13,484 nucleotides of DNA, taken from contig BAAFSQ010000270.1 in NCBI GenBank assembly GCA_054661495.1, positions 1 through 13,484 on the forward strand. The letters are read 5' to 3'. Every line of letters begins with the position of its first letter. Position 1 is the stretch's first letter. A program made the position numbers and the translations under genes. Positions 2,805 to 12,565 of this stretch are shown in pieces. The notes beneath the pieces were generated by a model. It saw only the letters and a list, made by a program, of their open reading frames with translations. It was not told the origin of the DNA and ran no database searches. This DNA comes from Zygophlyctis sp. KS116. Its lineage: Eukaryota; Fungi; Chytridiomycota.

Positions 2805-3120
2805 GTTCAGCGTGTGAAGCTGAGATATATGCAGGAGAACCTGATTTGGATCAAAGGAATTATCGAAGATTTGGGATTCGCGGTTAATGACACGATTAAG
2901 ATACATGAAGACAATCAAACTATGATAAGACTAAGTGAAAATGAAGCTTTAAACGAAAGATCAAAACATATAAGTGTTATATTAAATTTCATCAGATATC
3001 ATGTAAGACAGAAGAACGTGGAATTAAACTACATTGAATCAGAAAGAAATATTGCGGATACGTTTACAAAAGCGTTGGGAGGTAGTCAGTATGAAAGACT
3101 CAGAAATCAAGTCTTGCAGC
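2805..3120 (+). pseudogene. Ty1/copia RNase H, C-terminal part only
   Basis: SACEAEIYA, then WIKGIIEDLG...IHEDNQ...ERSKHI...FIR...NIADTFTKAL. The N-terminal catalytic segment (DADW.../RKST-type motif) is absent. Confidence 0.92.
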
Positions 3121-3132
3121 ATTCGGATGGAG

Positions 3133-3278
3133 TGTGGGAAGGAATGCAACAACCTTGATCTATATTCAGACATAAGATCTATATTTAGGAATTCTATATT
3201 TAGACATGGACTATAAATAGGGGTTTCTATAAATGAATTATACATCTGAAAAAGATAAAATCTGTTGAGCTAACAACA
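3133..3278 (+). mobile_element. Putative copia LTR between pol end and the next gag
   Basis: Starts TG just after the purine-rich ggatggag following RNase H, contains TATA-like ctataaatag, ends at an aaca, and is followed by a copia gag ATG at 3320. No second copy in the window, so the ends are approximate. Confidence 0.55.
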
Positions 3279-3319
3279 GATTAACAGTCGAAAGAAAGAA
3301 AGAAAGTCGAAACAAAACA

Positions 3320-3499
3320 ATGAAAGCAGAAGAGATTAAGAAGTTTAACGGAACTAACTGGTACGAGTTTGAGTCCGATATGATGTACTACTTGATGGCC
3401 AAGAAATTATGGCAAGTAGTGATGACGAAGGATAAGATTGGCTGTAAGACATTGGACTCTGAGGATGGTGAAGCCGAAGCACTAGGGTTAGGTTATTAG
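3320..3499 (+). pseudogene. Ty1/copia gag N-terminus, truncated (59 aa; not in the ORF track)
   Basis: MKAEEIKKFNGTNWYEFESDMMYYLMAKKLWQVV...EAEALGL matches the copia gag N-terminal pattern (KF.G.N...M..YL....LW..V). Confidence 0.82.
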
Positions 3500-3520
3500 G
3501 TTATCTAGGTGTTCATGGTC

Positions 3521-3566
3521 ATATTTAGAGAATATATTTAGTGAATATATTTAGAGAAGATATTTA
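3521..3566. repeat. 13-bp tandem repeat ATATTTAGAGAAT, about 3.5 copies
   Basis: Units start at 3521, 3534, 3547 and 3560 (partial), with single substitutions. Confidence 0.85.
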
Positions 3567-4115
3567 ATAAATGCGTGGTATTTATTCTGTCCTGTGACTT
3601 TTGAAAATGAATATTTTTATTAGAAAATATAAATAAATTTTTTTTAGACACGACTCGCTGTGACTCATGACTAAGAAAACTTACGCTGAGTCACGGACTG
3701 GAAAATTTTATCTAGGAAAATTTCTCTTCTCCATAGGATAATTTGCGGATAATTTTACCTCCAGTCACATATTTTTTTGCAAACTAGAAGAGTAGAATAA
3801 TCATACATAAACTAAACTAGAAAATATTAAACTAAGAAAATATTTATTGATTTCGCTGACGCTTTTTTCGTGCATCTATCCAAGTAGCTATAGAACGACC
3901 ATCCCGCTCCAGTTCCAAAGCTTCAATCGCATTTTCTAAAGTTTTAGTCTCCAGTCCTTTCTCTGTTGCAGACAGTCAACCGGCAAGCTTTTCGCCTGAT
4001 AAGCCCCAGTCAAAGCAGAATCGAGAACCCAATAAACCATTCTTTCAATTCGTGATTGGTCGACCATTGCATATGCCAAATATATGGCACCACGAGCTCG
4101 TCCTACGTGCGTGAC

Positions 4116-4142
4116 CTTTAATTATTAACTTTTTTGAGTTAC
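4116..4142 (-). other. 27-nt spliceosomal intron in the Crypton ORF
   Basis: GTAAC...TTAATAATTAAAG; contains an in-frame TAA; removal joins K|VTHVGR, the conserved K.TH..R motif. Confidence 0.78.
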
Positions 4143-4229
4143 CTTATTACAAGATATTTTAAAAGCTTCATATGCTTTTTTGATTAATTCTCTTTGTTTG
4201 GTATAAGTTTTTTCTTTCATACCATGTCC

Positions 4230-4258
4230 CTTAATATTAATTCATTTATTTCTCTTAC
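4230..4258 (-). other. 29-nt spliceosomal intron in the Crypton ORF
   Basis: GTAAG...TTAATATTAAG; removal restores the frame LLK|GHG. Confidence 0.75.
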
Positions 4259-4574
4259 CTTCAACAAGAATGTATTATACCAGTTTGCTCGCTCGGATAA
4301 AACCGGCCGTTGTTCCTTCTGGACATGAAAACGGTATAACAGGTGCAACGCGATAGCACTAATAGCACACAACTCGATGTCTTTATGTCGTTTTATTAAA
4401 GAAAAGAATCAACGTTACCTTAGCATACCTACCATCAGTGTCATTCTCTGCACTTGGCAGCCATACGCTGAACGAAATATGTTTTAGAATGAAGAAATAT
4501 TTTATCTTCAGTAATGTTTATAATTAAACAATTGAACCTTTAGTCGACAGATAATGAATTAGGGTTAAGAAATA

Positions 4575-5886
4575 TTGAACGAGCTGCAACTTGGGTAGAT
4601 AAAAATGAAGATTTTTTATCGATGCAACATATCTTTCAATGTGTTGGAATCTATTGCTTTTAAAAAATGATGATCTCAGGCAGTCCAGCGTTCGCAGGTT
4701 TGATTCCGACAGCAAAGCAATTAGGTGAAAGTAATTGGAATAAATGCAATCGAAATTTAAAACTTTAGGAATGAATATTTTGCTCTTCGGTCTGAACATC
4801 TTGTCAACTATATTATAATTGTGCCGAATTCCAAACCATTTTTTTACAGATCAGTGGATACAAGTGGAATAAAGTAAACCTTAGAAACTATTGCCAAGGA
4901 CATCATAGCAGTAACTGAACTGAGGAAATCGGCCCCCAAAAACTAGTATCAGTTGTCACTTATCATGCAAGTAATATGAGAGGTAATTTTGTTACAAATA
5001 AAATCTTTACAAGCCAGTGATAAAAATACGCCTCAAACACAAGTGAGTGCAGAGTTGGATGAAAAGCTCAACCTTCTATATTTAGATATCTATTTATAGA
5101 TCTATTTATAGAATCTGGTATAAAAGAGCTGCCGAGAGTACTTATAGCTTAATTTGTTTTTCTGAAAATATAAAGGAATCTCAATTCTTTCTTCTTCATT
5201 ACCTTGATTTTAACAAATTTATTATTTATTCACCTACCTGGGAGCGTGGAAAATAATCGAGGAAAAGTTACCCAATGTCAAATTAAAATTGCCAACATTT
5301 CTTGATTCTATTTCTGTTGTTAATATTATAAGAGGAAGGTGTCATTTGCTGTCTAAATTTAGAGAGTTAAAGCTTCCTTTAAATATAAAGAGATTTATTT
5401 CTCTCCCAGTTCCCACACGTTGGTATACTAAATTTAACTCTATATCAAATTTATTTGATAAAAAGAGATGTGTCAAGGACTAAAATACTTGCAGAATTAT
5501 TAGAGAATGACAAGTAGATCAATTTATCACGTTTTCTTTCAGGAAGATTACGCCTTAGTAGAGCATGTAAATAATCGCTGGAATTTTCTTCATACACAGT
5601 GTATGGGAATGGCTTACGTATTGAATCCTGCAAATATTGACCAATCTACGGTAGGGAACGATAGAGAAGGACTCTATCAAACTATTAATTAACCATATAT
5701 AAATTGTTAATGACGAGGAGAAACAACTCAATGCATAGGGAACTGATTGATCTTTGGAATAGCTTTCGTACTGGGGGCATTGAATTCTATGATTCAGGAC
5801 AAAGCGAAAGGTTATTGGATCCTCTATGGATGTGTAAAATATGCGCTCTTGCGGAAAATAGCCACTTAATTATATAGTGTACCAAT
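4575..5886 (+). pseudogene. hAT-superfamily transposase remnant (DUF659-like), heavily deleted and interrupted
   Basis: FYRCNISFNVLES.AFKK, EHLVNYIIIVPNSKPFFY..VDT, EIGPQKLVSVVT.HASNMR, AWKIIEEKLP, LPVPTRWY, RWNFLHTQCMGMAYVLNP, YW...G...Y.LLRKIA..LYSVP. It stops just before the expected S/T-SA.SER motif of the dimerisation domain. Confidence 0.85.
5018..5232 (+). mobile_element. LTR-like non-coding insert inside the hAT transposase
   Basis: Separates the adjacent hAT motifs SNMR and AWKIIEE; has TG...CA ends, three CTA(W)4TAG sites and TATAAAAG at 5119-5126. No target-site duplication found. Confidence 0.45.
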
Positions 5887-6882: not shown

Positions 6883-7716
6883 ATGCCTCCAAGAAAAAGT
6901 AAAAATAATGCTGCTTCCGGAACTACTGCTGGTATATCAGTTGCGGAGGGTTAGATCAGGTTGAATATTTAGCACCCCCTGAGGTCGCTGTGTTAACGAT
7001 CGTACCAAATTCCGCTGTTCAGAGCTCTACAGTACTTGCCCACAAGCCACTCAGGTCCGCTAACTGTTTCCCGTCTTACAGATCAGGGACTAATGCATAT
7101 AAATGGATTCAAGATATTACTTCTGCTTTTTACAGAAATAATATTATCAAAGTTGTTGACGGATCTCTTGCCAAACCGGCTGATTCTTTGATTTGCTGAA
7201 TCTGTTCTTATACTAGGATCATGGCTTGAAGGGGATACTCTTCGTTGGTATTTTAACGAGAAAAAGAAAGAAGAAACTCGGGAGTGGACATTTGACCTTT
7301 GGCTAGATCAATTACTTGAATCGTTTCCCGTTGCATCTACATCCCAAGAAAGTGAATATACAGTGTTTGGACTTGCTTGTTTACATCCTCAAGTAGATGA
7401 ATCTATAATGCAGTTCCACGTTCGATTTAACTCATACTTAAAAAAGATAGAAAAGAATATGTACACTGAAGGACTTATTAAAGACTGCTATTTAAAGACA
7501 CTTCGTACACATCGAGAACAGCTTTGGATGTTGATTGCAACAAATCCAACCTTAGCAAAATTAGATCAACTAATGAGGGAAGCTCTTCGTCTAGATAAGG
7601 TTCTCCAAGTGAGAGGAAAATCACAAGATCCTAAAGTAGAATTGATTCAGGATGACCCCTTCAAAGCCAAACTTTCTGATGAATCTCAGAAAATACAAGA
7701 TCTAGAAAAGCAACTA
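6883..7716 (+). pseudogene. Ty3/gypsy gag, 5' part
   Basis: Starts MPPRK downstream of the PBS; FPSY...NAYKWI, WLEGDTLRWY...W...LLESFP, Q.DESIMQFHVRF (retrotransposon capsid pattern). Ends QDLEKQL at the TA preceding the pogo TIR. Confidence 0.85.
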
Positions 7717-7745
7717 CCGTAATTCCGATGGCCTAACGAACGCGT
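7717..7745. repeat. 29-bp pogo terminal inverted repeat (3' end of the element)
   Basis: CCGTAATTCCGATGGCCTAACGAACGCGT preceded by TA (7715-7716); identical copy at 11043-11071. Confidence 0.9.
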
Positions 7746-7796: not shown

Positions 7797-8131
7797 ATGG
7801 ACTTCTCCCCTTCTGCCCAAGCGAGTCTCCTAATAGTGGGACTTAATAATCATAATTCGAATAACCAAAAAAATAATGTTGTGGCATTAAAGCCTGATAT
7901 TTTCTTAATGAAGATGGAAAAAATGAGTATTGTCTAAAGGTATTTGAAATCCGGGATGGAGTGGAAACTGAATTAATAGGCTATGTAGCTAGAGAATTTC
8001 TTCAATTAAGGGGAATCTATGAGAATAAATTGGCACAAGTAACCAAATTATATAGCGATTCAAGTAACTCACAAGAAAAGATGGTCTGTGCTCAAAGAAA
8101 TGGAGTTTGTCTTTGTAGATTAATAAATTAA
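7797..8131 (+). pseudogene. Second ORF inside the pogo element (~111 aa if one frameshift near 7900 is repaired); possible HIRAN-like domain
   Basis: MDFSPSAQASLLIVGLNN...VVALKPDIF / LNEDGKNEYCLKVFEIRDGVETELIGYVAREFLQLRGIYENKLAQVTKLYSDSSNSQEKMVCAQRNGVCLCRLIN*. The frame 7898-8131 is stop-free. The fold assignment is inference. Confidence 0.6.
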
Positions 8132-8133
8132 AT

Positions 8134-8654
8134 TCAATAATAACCACATTTCTCAAAAGTCTTGCGAATTGAATCTTCTGAAACTTCTTTAAAGCTTTCT
8201 GTTATCCAGAACGATAATTGCTGCCTTGTTATTTCCTTCCCATTTTGGACATTATCAGTCTCCATCATGAATTTCACCCAATATCTTTTTAAATAATCTT
8301 TAAAGGGCTTATTCACTCCAACGTCCAGCGGTTGTAACCGCGAAGTTGAACCCCCTGGCAAAATACTGACAATGCATGAAAGAGAGCGTATTGCCTTTAA
8401 TACATCAGGAACTTTATGAGAGGTATAATCATCCATAATAACATGAGAAATTCCTGGGTTTTGAGCAAGATATGGTTTTAAAACTAGATTTACCCATTTG
8501 AGCATTGATTCTGAATCATTCCAAGCTGCAGGTTGAAAACAATACCTGGCATTTGGAGCGTATCCATTTCCTATTGTGGCCTTTTTTTCATTTGTTTTTC
8601 CTACTTATTTAACCTTGAAGATATCCTACCAGGCTGTCCTTTAAATATAATCAG
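8134..8654 (-). pseudogene. pogo-like (Tc1/mariner superfamily, DDE_1) transposase, C-terminal half, DD35D
   Basis: LIIFKGQPG...Q.AAWND...W...VIMDDYTSH...LPGGSTSRLQPLDVGVNKPFKD...IRKTFEKCG; 35 residues between the second and third catalytic Asp. Confidence 0.93.
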
Positions 8655-8657
8655 TCT

Positions 8658-11042
8658 AAAGAAATCGATGCAAAATTCATAAAATAATCCAGAGATAGAA
8701 GATTGTCCAGTAAATTTATAGAGATGGAGTTTCTCTTGAAACGTTTGACATTGATGACACGATCGGCAGTAATGATCAATTTTCTTAGAGAGATAAGGGA
8801 ACCAAAATCGCATTGAAACCCATTTAATAACAACTTTTGAACTAGGATGTCCCATAGAATCATGAAAACCATAGAGTATTTTCTTTAATTCATCATCTGA
8901 TCGGATTACTTTTCTCGAGAAAGGGTGGCTTTTACGATAAAGCTCGTCATTTATAATTTCGAATGACGTAACTTGTTTCAAAGTATTTCTTGATATTGAT
9001 GTAACATGATCTCCACACAGATAGTTATAAATGACAGAATACATATCGATATTCGCAGTTTCTTCTAAGTTAAATGCACTATGACGGGAGAGAAAATCTG
9101 CTACAATGTTTTCTTTTCCATTCCGATGATTAATCTGAAAATCAAAGGAGAGTAGATAATTAATCCATCGAATAATACGTCCACTTGGTTCTTTAGAATT
9201 TAAAATTGAGGCGACTGCTGAATTATCAGTAAATACTATAAATTTTTGTATAATCAAATATTTTTGGAAGTGTTTAAATCCTGCAACAACGGCTAATGCT
9301 TCTTTTTCGTAATTCGAATAATTCTTCTCTGAAGAGTTCAACTTTCTAGAATAATACGAAATAGGTTTCATTTGGCAAGACCGAGAAACGAACGTAAGAG
9401 CTTCAGGTTGGTAGGGGCGATTAAGTCTAAAAGTGCAGAGAGTTTCGCGGGGGAAGGCTTAACTCCTTCAGCTGAAATGTGGTAACCCAGAAAGAGAAAT
9501 GACGACTGAAAAAATTGGCATTTCTTAAATTTCAATCATACATTGTGCAAGGCAAGAATTTGAAAAACGATGTTCAAATGTTGTATATGCTCGTCCATGG
9601 AATTACTGAAAATGCACAAATCATCCAAGTAAACGACAATAAATTCATATATATAAGGAGCAAAAAGTTGTTACATGAGTCTTAAGAAGTGAGCAGGAGC
9701 GTTAGAAAGTCCAAAAGGCATAACACGAAATCTAAACGTACCAAAGGGAGAAATAAAGAGGTAAAGTCTCGAGTATCTTCGGCAATCGGAATTTGCCAAA
9801 AACAATCGAGTGTGGTAATTATACGTTTACCAGACAATGAGTCAAGACAATCATCGATTCGCGGGATGGGGAATTTATCTTTTATCGTGATTGCATTAAG
9901 TTTCTTTTAGTTGATGCAGAAGCGGATGAGTTCAAGGGTTAGGAATAGGTTTAAATGAATATACCCTTATAAATCTGGAGGAATGGCAGGATTCTCTAGG
10001 ATATTCTTTGTTTGTTTCTCGCAAAGGCTATAACTGGAAATCGGCGGATCTTGCAAATAATCTTTAGTAACTGCATTTAATAAGAAAGTAGTAACCGGTT
10101 TCTCTTCCTGGTCGTTTTCTTCATCATCAATTTCAGAGTCTTCAGAACTATCTGACATAACTGAGTCCTCTAATAGATCTTTTAACTCAGCTTTTGTATA
10201 TAACTGCAGATTGACTCTTCTTCCATTGAAATTTATCGAAAATGAATCTTGTGAATAGACACCTAACATTATGTCACATGACATTTCTTCCAAGATCAAG
10301 AAATTGATTAACAAGCAGCAGCCATCGAAATGAACGTTTAAGTCTGCAGAATATTGAGCGCTACATGTCTTTCCATTTACCGGCTGAAGATAGATAGGTG
10401 TTTTTAATTTCTTAATAGCGTTCAGAGGGACAGCTAGTGACTTCAAACATGCGGCTGAAACGATACAAAACGTTGAACCACTATCGACATAAAGACCAAT
10501 TTTCTTATTACAGATCTCCGCTATAATGTGAGTTGGCTTTTGTGCTTTCTCTAGTGAAGAGACTTTCTTTCCTTTTTTCTGGTTTGGCAAACACTTAATA
10601 AATTCATTTATCATCCTAGGATTTGACTTAACTACTTCCCTGAGCGAAACATCCAACTTTGTATCCATAACTTTAGTCAGCAATGATGACTCTTCTTGGA
10701 ATCGAACAGACTTAGCTATTTTTTTAGAAGGAGGCGTGAATTTAGATCTTTTCATCGTTGGTGTACCATTCGTATCACTGGTCCCATTTATCAAGTCTAG
10801 GACCCTTACTCTCTTTGTATCAAAAGTGTCACTCGGGGTTTGAGAAGCTAAGTTCACGTTATTTGCATTTGTAGCTGGGGGTCTTCCTAGTGGTACGCTG
10901 TTTGATCCAGTCGCTGGTGAACGAGCCCAATAATCAGGATGGAACGTTTTATCACTTGCAATATGCCCTGTCTGATTGCACCGAAAGCATGTTCTTTCTT
11001 CTGTTCTTGTAGAACCTTTTTTCACCAATAAAGCTAACCCTA
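8658..11042 (-). pseudogene. Ty3/gypsy gag 3' part, protease, RT, RNase H and integrase N-terminus, with internal deletions
   Basis: CFRCNQTGH knuckle; LYVDSGST protease; RFCIN.KKLNAITIKDKFPIPRIDD, MPFGLSNAP and YLDD (9620-9631) RT; YYSRKL..EKNYS..EKEALA, FTDN, VADFLSR RNase H; HDSMGH...CHQCQ integrase zinc finger; ends at FCIDF. Confidence 0.95.
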
Positions 11043-11071
11043 CCGTAATTCCGATGGCCTAACGAACGCGT
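11043..11071. repeat. 29-bp pogo terminal inverted repeat (5' end of the element)
   Basis: Identical to 7717-7745, preceded by TA (11041-11042) and followed by the transposase ATG at 11123. Confidence 0.9.
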
Positions 11072-11122
11072 CGTAGCTTTTTTCAATTGTTTATTTACAC
11101 AAGAGTTCGTACGGCCATCGGA

Positions 11123-11345
11123 ATGGAAAATACTCCAGTACATAAGCGCCAAAGAAAGTATAATTTTGACACCTCCGTGAAAAAGAGATTGCTTATTCTA
11201 GTCCAAGAAAAACTTCATTATCAGCTGTATGTAGAGAATACAATATATCAAAGTCCACAGTATCTGGATGGAAGCATCAAATTGATTTAAACTTAGACTA
11301 TCCCAAAGACAATTTACATTACATCAAGGACCTAAATCTACTGGT
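11123..11345 (+). pseudogene. pogo transposase N-terminal helix-turn-helix, frameshifted and truncated
   Basis: MENTPVHKRQRKYNFDTSVKKRL... then, after a frameshift, SLSAVCREYNISKSTVSGWK, a typical pogo N-terminal HTH pattern. Right end approximate. Confidence 0.8.
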
Positions 11346-11649: not shown

Positions 11650-12565
11650 AGAAGCTCAACACAATTAAAAAACTTATTGAAGCTTATTGAAGATAAGAGC
11701 CAAGCAGCGATCAGATCTAGCCGTAACTCCATTGGATGTCTGAAAATGAGAAAAGGATCAGATCTTACCTCATTCTTCAACAAATTTCATGCTGCATATG
11801 TTCAGTTGATGGACGCAGGAGGAAAATTGACAGAATTGGAGCAGATTGAACTTTTTCTTCAAGCTCTTCCAAATTCCAAGTACTTGGCCGTCAAAGCTCA
11901 ATTTGATCTGTCTACTCAAGTTATAGTAAATGGAATCACAAAAGACAATGATCTCAAATTATCTTATATTTTTGAACGATTGAAAATGTTCGAATTGATC
12001 TCTGCAGATCAATCACAGGAGGCGGAATCTGATCAGGTTTTCAATACGCAAGAAAAAAAATCGATTTCAAAGTCTAGCAACCAGGGCAACAATAAACAGG
12101 GTGGCAAATTCAATGAATCCCTTGTATGTTTTAACTGCGGTGGTTTTGGACACAAACCGTTTCAATGTGCATCTCCCAAACGACCTCAGGACTTTTGTCC
12201 GCCTCATTTGAAGGAAATTATGGACAAGCGAAGTAAGAAACATAAATATGATACATCCAAAGTTTCTACTTTGGATGTATCATATTTATGTTTCTTTTAT
12301 TGACGACTGCAAATCAGAAAAGCAACTAAATAAGATAAATGTGTCTTATTTTGTTTCACCTGAAATGAGATCATCTATATCCACTATCATAGATAGTGGA
12401 GCGAATTGCAACATATTTAATAATTTAGATATGTTCATAAAATCAAAATTCTCTTATTACAAACAACCAAAATCATTACAAACCTATCAAGATAATACTT
12501 CTCCAGATACGATTAGAGAAGGACCTGCATTTATCTATACAAAGATAAATAATATTGAAGTAGGA
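11650..12565 (+). pseudogene. Ty1/copia gag (UBN2-like region and zinc knuckle) plus protease fragment
   Basis: LKMRKGSDLTSFFNKF...LMDAGG...FLQALP.SKY; CFNCGGFGHKPFQC; IIDSGANCNIFNN in the next frame. Confidence 0.88.

Follow-up and report, generated by a model that had tools for sequence, protein, structure and literature searches.

The analyzed stretch of DNA (hereafter, the window) comprises 13,484 nucleotides of a Zygophlyctis sp. KS116 contig (BAAFSQ010000270.1, assembly GCA_054661495.1), has a GC content of about 35% and belongs to a 12.7-Mb assembly with very short introns. Within it, a 29-bp terminal inverted repeat (TIR) at 7717–7745 (plus strand) follows a TA target-site duplication at 7715–7716 and begins with CCGTA, as in all family members; it marks the ORF2 end of the element, the 3′ end of the transposase. 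An ATG at 7797, 51 nt after the TIR, opens a plus-strand gene of 111 codons (7797–8131; hereafter, ORF2), whose stop at 8129–8131 is separated by 2 nt from the stop (8136–8134) of a pogo transposase on the minus strand. The gene is absent from the list of open reading frames as it is split by a 1-base deletion in a T-run at about 7899–7903. All seven other genomic copies that we aligned carry one more base there, intact homologues of 103–111 aa exist, and the closest intact homologue outside the genome (P0005, 60% identical) is exactly 111 aa long; in our translations the window's copy was read through with an X at the break. The initial annotation had described this ORF, the extra base restoring 111 aa and the tail-to-tail arrangement within the TIRs, and the observation is confirmed.

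The last exon of the transposase (8134–8600, minus strand) matches the DDE_1 domain (PF03184, E 1.6e-14, with the exons searched separately) and has its second and third catalytic Asp at about 8433 and 8325, giving the DD35D spacing; the first Asp is lost from this copy but is present in L033, L039 and L044, three intact outside elements of 1.7–1.8 kb with both genes and perfect or near-perfect TIRs. A 29-nt GT..AG intron at 8601–8629 (minus strand) lies at the same position as a 26-nt intron in L033 and is absent in L039. It is followed by the last codons of the upstream exon (8630–8651, minus strand), and the blastn alignment to L033 ends at 8651, just before an inversion/deletion breakpoint. 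The second TIR, on the transposase 5′ side at 11043–11071 (plus strand), is preceded by a TA at 11041–11042 and is identical to the first (0.00 matches expected in shuffled sequences) but in direct, not inverted, orientation. It is followed by an inverted copy of the inner TIR at 11105–11124 (minus strand; 18 of 20 matches) just before the transposase ATG, a subterminal repeat also seen in the loci L024, L022 and L039, and by the frameshifted and truncated N terminus of the transposase (11123–11345, plus strand). This fragment showed only weak matches to DNA-binding domains, HTH_28 at E 7e-4 and CENP-B_N at E 0.03, below the cut-off, and HTH_Tnp_Tc5 was found only faintly in locus L041.

Gag-like ORFs of a Ty3/gypsy retrotransposon abut both TIRs, and reverse transcriptase, RNase H and integrase pieces fill 8652–9960. 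The alignment to L033 covers the window positions 7819–8651 (minus) and 11041–11338 (plus). The pogo element thus inserted at a TA between gag-like ORFs of the gypsy element; later, a block of about 2.7 kb (from about 8652 to about 11345), containing gypsy pol and gag parts and the pogo 5′ end, was inverted, which accounts for the direct orientation of the second TIR, and the middle of the transposase was lost. This copy is dead. Elsewhere in the window, perfect inverted repeats at 12235–12296 (29 nt with a 4-nt spacer) and 230–273 (18 nt with an 8-nt spacer) lie inside or beside retrotransposon fragments and may represent rearrangement or assembly junctions, and a 13-bp tandem repeat of about four units lies in an AT-rich stretch at 3521–3572.

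To study the association of the two genes, we searched the genome with a family profile and found nine matches, all of them in pogo elements or fragments, opposite in strand to transposase sequence and just inside a TIR where that end is preserved. Eight belong to the subfamily of the window's copy (56–67% identity), and most copies in this genome are broken. The ninth (E 2e-14) sits in a distant second pogo family on contig C236 (12596–13900; positions 3097–4403 of excerpt L023); its long-type ORF2 carries an inserted basic KKRGRP segment resembling an AT-hook, and a near-identical copy is found in a freshwater metagenome contig (L032). Pogo fragments without ORF2, on contigs C383, C615, C653 and C502, are all cut before the relevant end and are uninformative about loss of the gene. 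On contig C159, a mini-element of about 380 bp (9346–9724; positions 1347–1725 of excerpt L029) has both TIRs and holds short pieces of both the transposase and ORF2. In the same excerpt (3051–4894), a 31-bp inverted-repeat pair (87%) encloses a hAT-like transposase region and is flanked by pieces of another pogo transposase, probably reflecting a hAT element nested in a pogo.

A single-sequence search with the intact genomic ORF2 found no homologues, whereas a profile of the genome's own copies found 59 proteins among 1.8 billion representatives and the enlarged profile found 315. The named members are hypothetical proteins of the diatom Fragilaria crotonensis and the chytrid Chytridium lagenaria, and the nearest cluster in the ESM Atlas is eukaryotic, with diatoms the most common recorded phylum; a feature search of the Atlas gave no hit at 0.8 or above. 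A scan of metagenome contigs gave one locus, and no relative was found on viral contigs. We read the genomic context of twelve outside proteins, ranging from 98% to about 22% identity to P0005 and not including the Chytridium protein. All twelve face a convergent pogo transposase, nine with DDE_1 on record and three recognized by motif or identity, and the DD35D spacing was found in all outside elements with the domain. The stop-to-stop distances are –4 to 392 nt, and again 2 nt in L044. For eight of the twelve, both TIRs were seen, 26–30 bp long, starting TA|CCGTA and enclosing both genes in 1.7–3.0 kb; paired TIRs were present in 10 outside loci. Long-type clusters of 25–102 near-identical members (those of P0149, P0164 and P0139) on megabase-scale long-read contigs suggest a recently amplified family in some host. 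One database protein joins a sirtuin-like domain to a partial ORF2 domain and another holds two partial ORF2 domains (P0023 and P0031), either of which could be a transposon insertion artefact or a fusion.

We then studied the selection acting on ORF2 and its inheritance with the transposase. Between subfamilies, the median dN/dS of ORF2 was 0.29 (Nei–Gojobori, 25 unsaturated pairs) in comparison with 0.21 for the transposase, and third codon positions varied most (47% identical versus 69–75%), showing purifying selection; pairs of near-identical dead copies gave values of about 1, as predicted by neutral decay. The ORF2 and transposase distances correlated across 13 elements (Mantel rho 0.71, p 1e-4), and the two trees, built from family members only, recovered the same diatom-type clade, although the deeper nodes were weak. 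The evidence for expression is only a hint: a single unstranded contig of 171 nt from an estuary metatranscriptome matches 7933–8102 with three differences and covers ORF2 only.

The initial annotation had proposed a resemblance to the HIRAN beta-barrel. AlphaFold2 models of P0005 (pLDDT 90) and of the Fragilaria protein (pLDDT 94), which are 27% identical, have the same layout of a barrel and helices. Among 48,161 solved chains, the only ones scoring above Z 5.0 were Lactobacillus lp_0118 (3K2Y, a bacterial HIRAN, though this assignment is only weakly backed here), the HLTF HIRAN domain (4S0N/4XZG) and Rad5 (6L8O), with Z of 7.9, 7.6 and 6.2 for the first model and 8.1, 7.0 and 6.0 for the second (next 5.0 and 4.3), over 87–94 aligned residues at an rmsd of 2.9–4.8. 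Foldseek placed HLTF HIRAN first for P0005 (probability 0.99, TM about 0.5, E 0.05), and HIRAN clusters were returned from the Atlas and viral libraries. The scores are moderate, however: the Foldseek E-values are at least 0.05, and a Z under 8 can reflect a common barrel. The shared motif A-I-x-V...(I/V)-G-(Y/F)-(V/L)-x-R aligns with HIRAN, but the support from sequence is otherwise weak. None of 55 members hit the Pfam HIRAN profile (PF08797), searches of Pfam, PHROGs and PDB sequences gave nothing relevant, and hhalign against six phage HIRANs gave a probability of only 7–20% over 27–38 columns, confined to the motif. The host's own Rad5-type HIRAN gene (contig C7) was too diverged to serve as a bridge.

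In HLTF, D94 holds the 3′-OH, while Y72 and Y93 pinch the last two bases (PMC5773155, PMC4666394). We mapped this pocket by sequence register, not by coordinates, with the register at Y72 the less secure, and found the Asn-Pro-Tyr-Asp loop carrying N91, Y93 and D94 to be replaced by a long beta-hairpin in ORF2. No Tyr is conserved, the D94 column is Glu in 81% of the long subfamily and Asn in 80% of the short subfamily to which the window's copy belongs, and the adjacent column holds a Glu conserved at 87–100%. About 90% of the members add a Cys/His insert, C-x2-H-x2-3-C, after the first strand and a distal Cys. The two covary perfectly, 147 members having both and 15 lacking both, which suggests a single putative zinc site lost in the window's subfamily, though the counts are not phylogenetically independent. 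The C-terminal helix is basic (on average 4.1 K/R against 1.4 D/E), and 91 of 106 long tails carry a basic cluster resembling a nuclear localization signal.

The interpretation given in the initial annotation is partly supported. A second element-borne gene, its conserved tail-to-tail linkage to DDE_1 transposases, a predicted HIRAN-like fold and stramenopile (diatom) homologues were upheld, and purifying selection on ORF2, which had been named beforehand as a test, was found, but the binding of free 3′-OH ends in the manner of HLTF is not supported so far. Its statement that Tc1/mariner elements normally encode only a transposase has known exceptions in the ciliate TBE and Tec elements (PMC7325037); we found none described for pogo.

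Our analyses establish that ORF2 is a permanent gene of a pogo (DD35D) lineage, encoded from the other end and convergent on the transposase, kept by purifying selection and inherited with it across fungus-like hosts and diatoms, and this much is close to certain. That it folds as a HIRAN-like six-stranded barrel is a prediction that we consider likely. The rest is inference, including any binding of DNA or of 3′-OH ends, which is unproven and for which no biochemical data exist. The gene was probably captured from a HIRAN gene and remodeled, and it is probably transcribed inward from its own TIR end, as mudrB is in maize MuDR. The protein would act in the nucleus as a transposition helper that binds DNA ends or single/double-strand junctions made by the transposase, at the excised element or the donor break, protecting them or steering repair so that copies are gained; the binding would occur through a remodeled surface and not the tyrosine/aspartate pocket of HLTF. 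We give this helper role a probability of about 0.45. Most pogo elements transpose with the transposase alone, so the helper is not generally essential.

The alternatives for the role of ORF2 are each less likely. The protein could be a regulator or an anti-silencing factor that binds the DNA or RNA of the element, or host silencing factors, to keep the element expressed or to tune the transposase dose, with no part in the DNA-breaking step. The loss of the 3′-OH pocket is consistent with this, OB-like barrels also bind RNA, SmpB appears among the weaker fold matches (Z 3.2–3.5), convergent transcription would make double-stranded RNA if either transcript read through, and the one RNA contig covers ORF2 only. 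Anti-silencing proteins tend to be fast-evolving and host-specific, however, whereas ORF2 is conserved from fungus-like hosts to diatoms at a rate near that of the transposase. About equally doubtful is a target-selection factor that binds forks, nicks, chromatin or a host protein and brings the transpososome there, like the Myb/SANT partner of PIF/Harbinger. HIRAN proteins act at stalled forks (PMC4666394), and the basic helix and the putative zinc knuckle could bind DNA or protein. Among the true TIR ends of the window and the loci L022–L058, C precedes the duplicated TA in about 21 of 31 despite AT-rich hosts, and T in most others, implying a preferred C-TA-G site; this also explains the telomere-like unit at the 11040 junction of the window as a target site. 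A short bias of this kind is what a DDE transposase alone can give, as in IS630 elements, and the flanks show no single gene or repeat target.

A convergent resemblance, with ORF2 a common small beta-barrel serving an unrelated role such as a zinc-dependent adaptor or a small enzyme, is improbable. The moderate fold scores, an identity of 8–16% and the lack of a significant sequence link would allow it, but three independent HIRAN structures take the top places for two diverged models, and the one conserved sequence motif falls on the conserved motif of HIRAN. A chance or passenger ORF is refuted by the more than 300 homologous proteins, the purifying selection between subfamilies, the fixed position and orientation in every context read and the codivergence with the transposase, despite the broken state of most copies in this genome. 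We also rejected an antisense shadow ORF, as ORF2 does not overlap the transposase; an assembly chimera, as the same layout occurs in many independent assemblies; and a host gene captured in one copy only, given the codivergence.

Pogo elements are treated as one-gene transposons, and one of them, Passer, is being developed as a gene-transfer tool. A conserved second gene in a widespread but apparently undescribed group of elements in chytrid, diatom and uncultured aquatic hosts changes that picture, gives an identity to several hundred hypothetical proteins and serves as a marker for an overlooked lineage, while intact elements such as L033, L039 and L044 make the helper question directly testable. 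The farthest-reaching reading, possible but less likely than not, is that a eukaryotic cut-and-paste lineage long ago captured a HIRAN DNA-end-recognition domain from the repair machinery, rebuilt it with a zinc knuckle and uses it as a dedicated partner that handles the transposase-made ends and steers donor-break repair or target choice. This would be the first described accessory protein of any pogo element and, as far as we could find, the first HIRAN-fold protein in a eukaryotic transposon, and would extend HIRAN-fold biology beyond fork repair. Our literature searches, which did not extend to Repbase or most subscription journals, found no paper joining HIRAN and transposons or describing a second pogo gene.

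Among known systems, the element agrees with the DD35D groups of the pogo superfamily (Passer, Fot-like; PMC7386202, PMC7325037) in its DDE_1 transposase, TIRs of 40 bp or less, TA duplication, length of 1.7–3.0 kb and stramenopile and fungal hosts, and may share their N-terminal HTH, matched only weakly here; it is a pogo by transposase, TIR and target duplication. It differs in TIRs starting CCGTA and in the second, convergent, nontransposase gene found inside the TIRs; the survey sections consulted (PMC7386202, section 8; PMC7325037, section 10) describe only ORFs encoding transposases. ORF2 shares with the HIRAN domain (PF08797) the predicted six-stranded barrel with flanking helices, as the best structural match in all libraries, the AIxV...GYVxR-type motif and the stand-alone size of about 100 residues seen in bacteria and phages. 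It differs in having no Pfam hit, in the hairpin replacing the Asn-Pro-Tyr-Asp loop, in lacking a conserved tyrosine sandwich, in an extra C-terminal helix and, in most members, the C-x2-H-x2-3-C insert and distal Cys, and in being encoded by a eukaryotic transposon; it should be called HIRAN-like and not a member of PF08797. The ciliate TBE and Tec elements (PMC7325037) are likewise multi-ORF Tc1/mariner elements but are DD34E/DD35E with three ORFs (zinc-finger protein, recombinase) and longer TIRs, and they are not known to encode a homologue of ORF2. In the inferred helper role, the element would work like the two-gene cut-and-paste elements MuDR (mudrA/mudrB), PIF/Harbinger and CACTA, which combine a transposase with a small helper gene. 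MuDR also has two convergent genes transcribed inward from the TIRs, while these elements belong to different transposase superfamilies and their helpers have unrelated folds, Myb/SANT in Harbinger.
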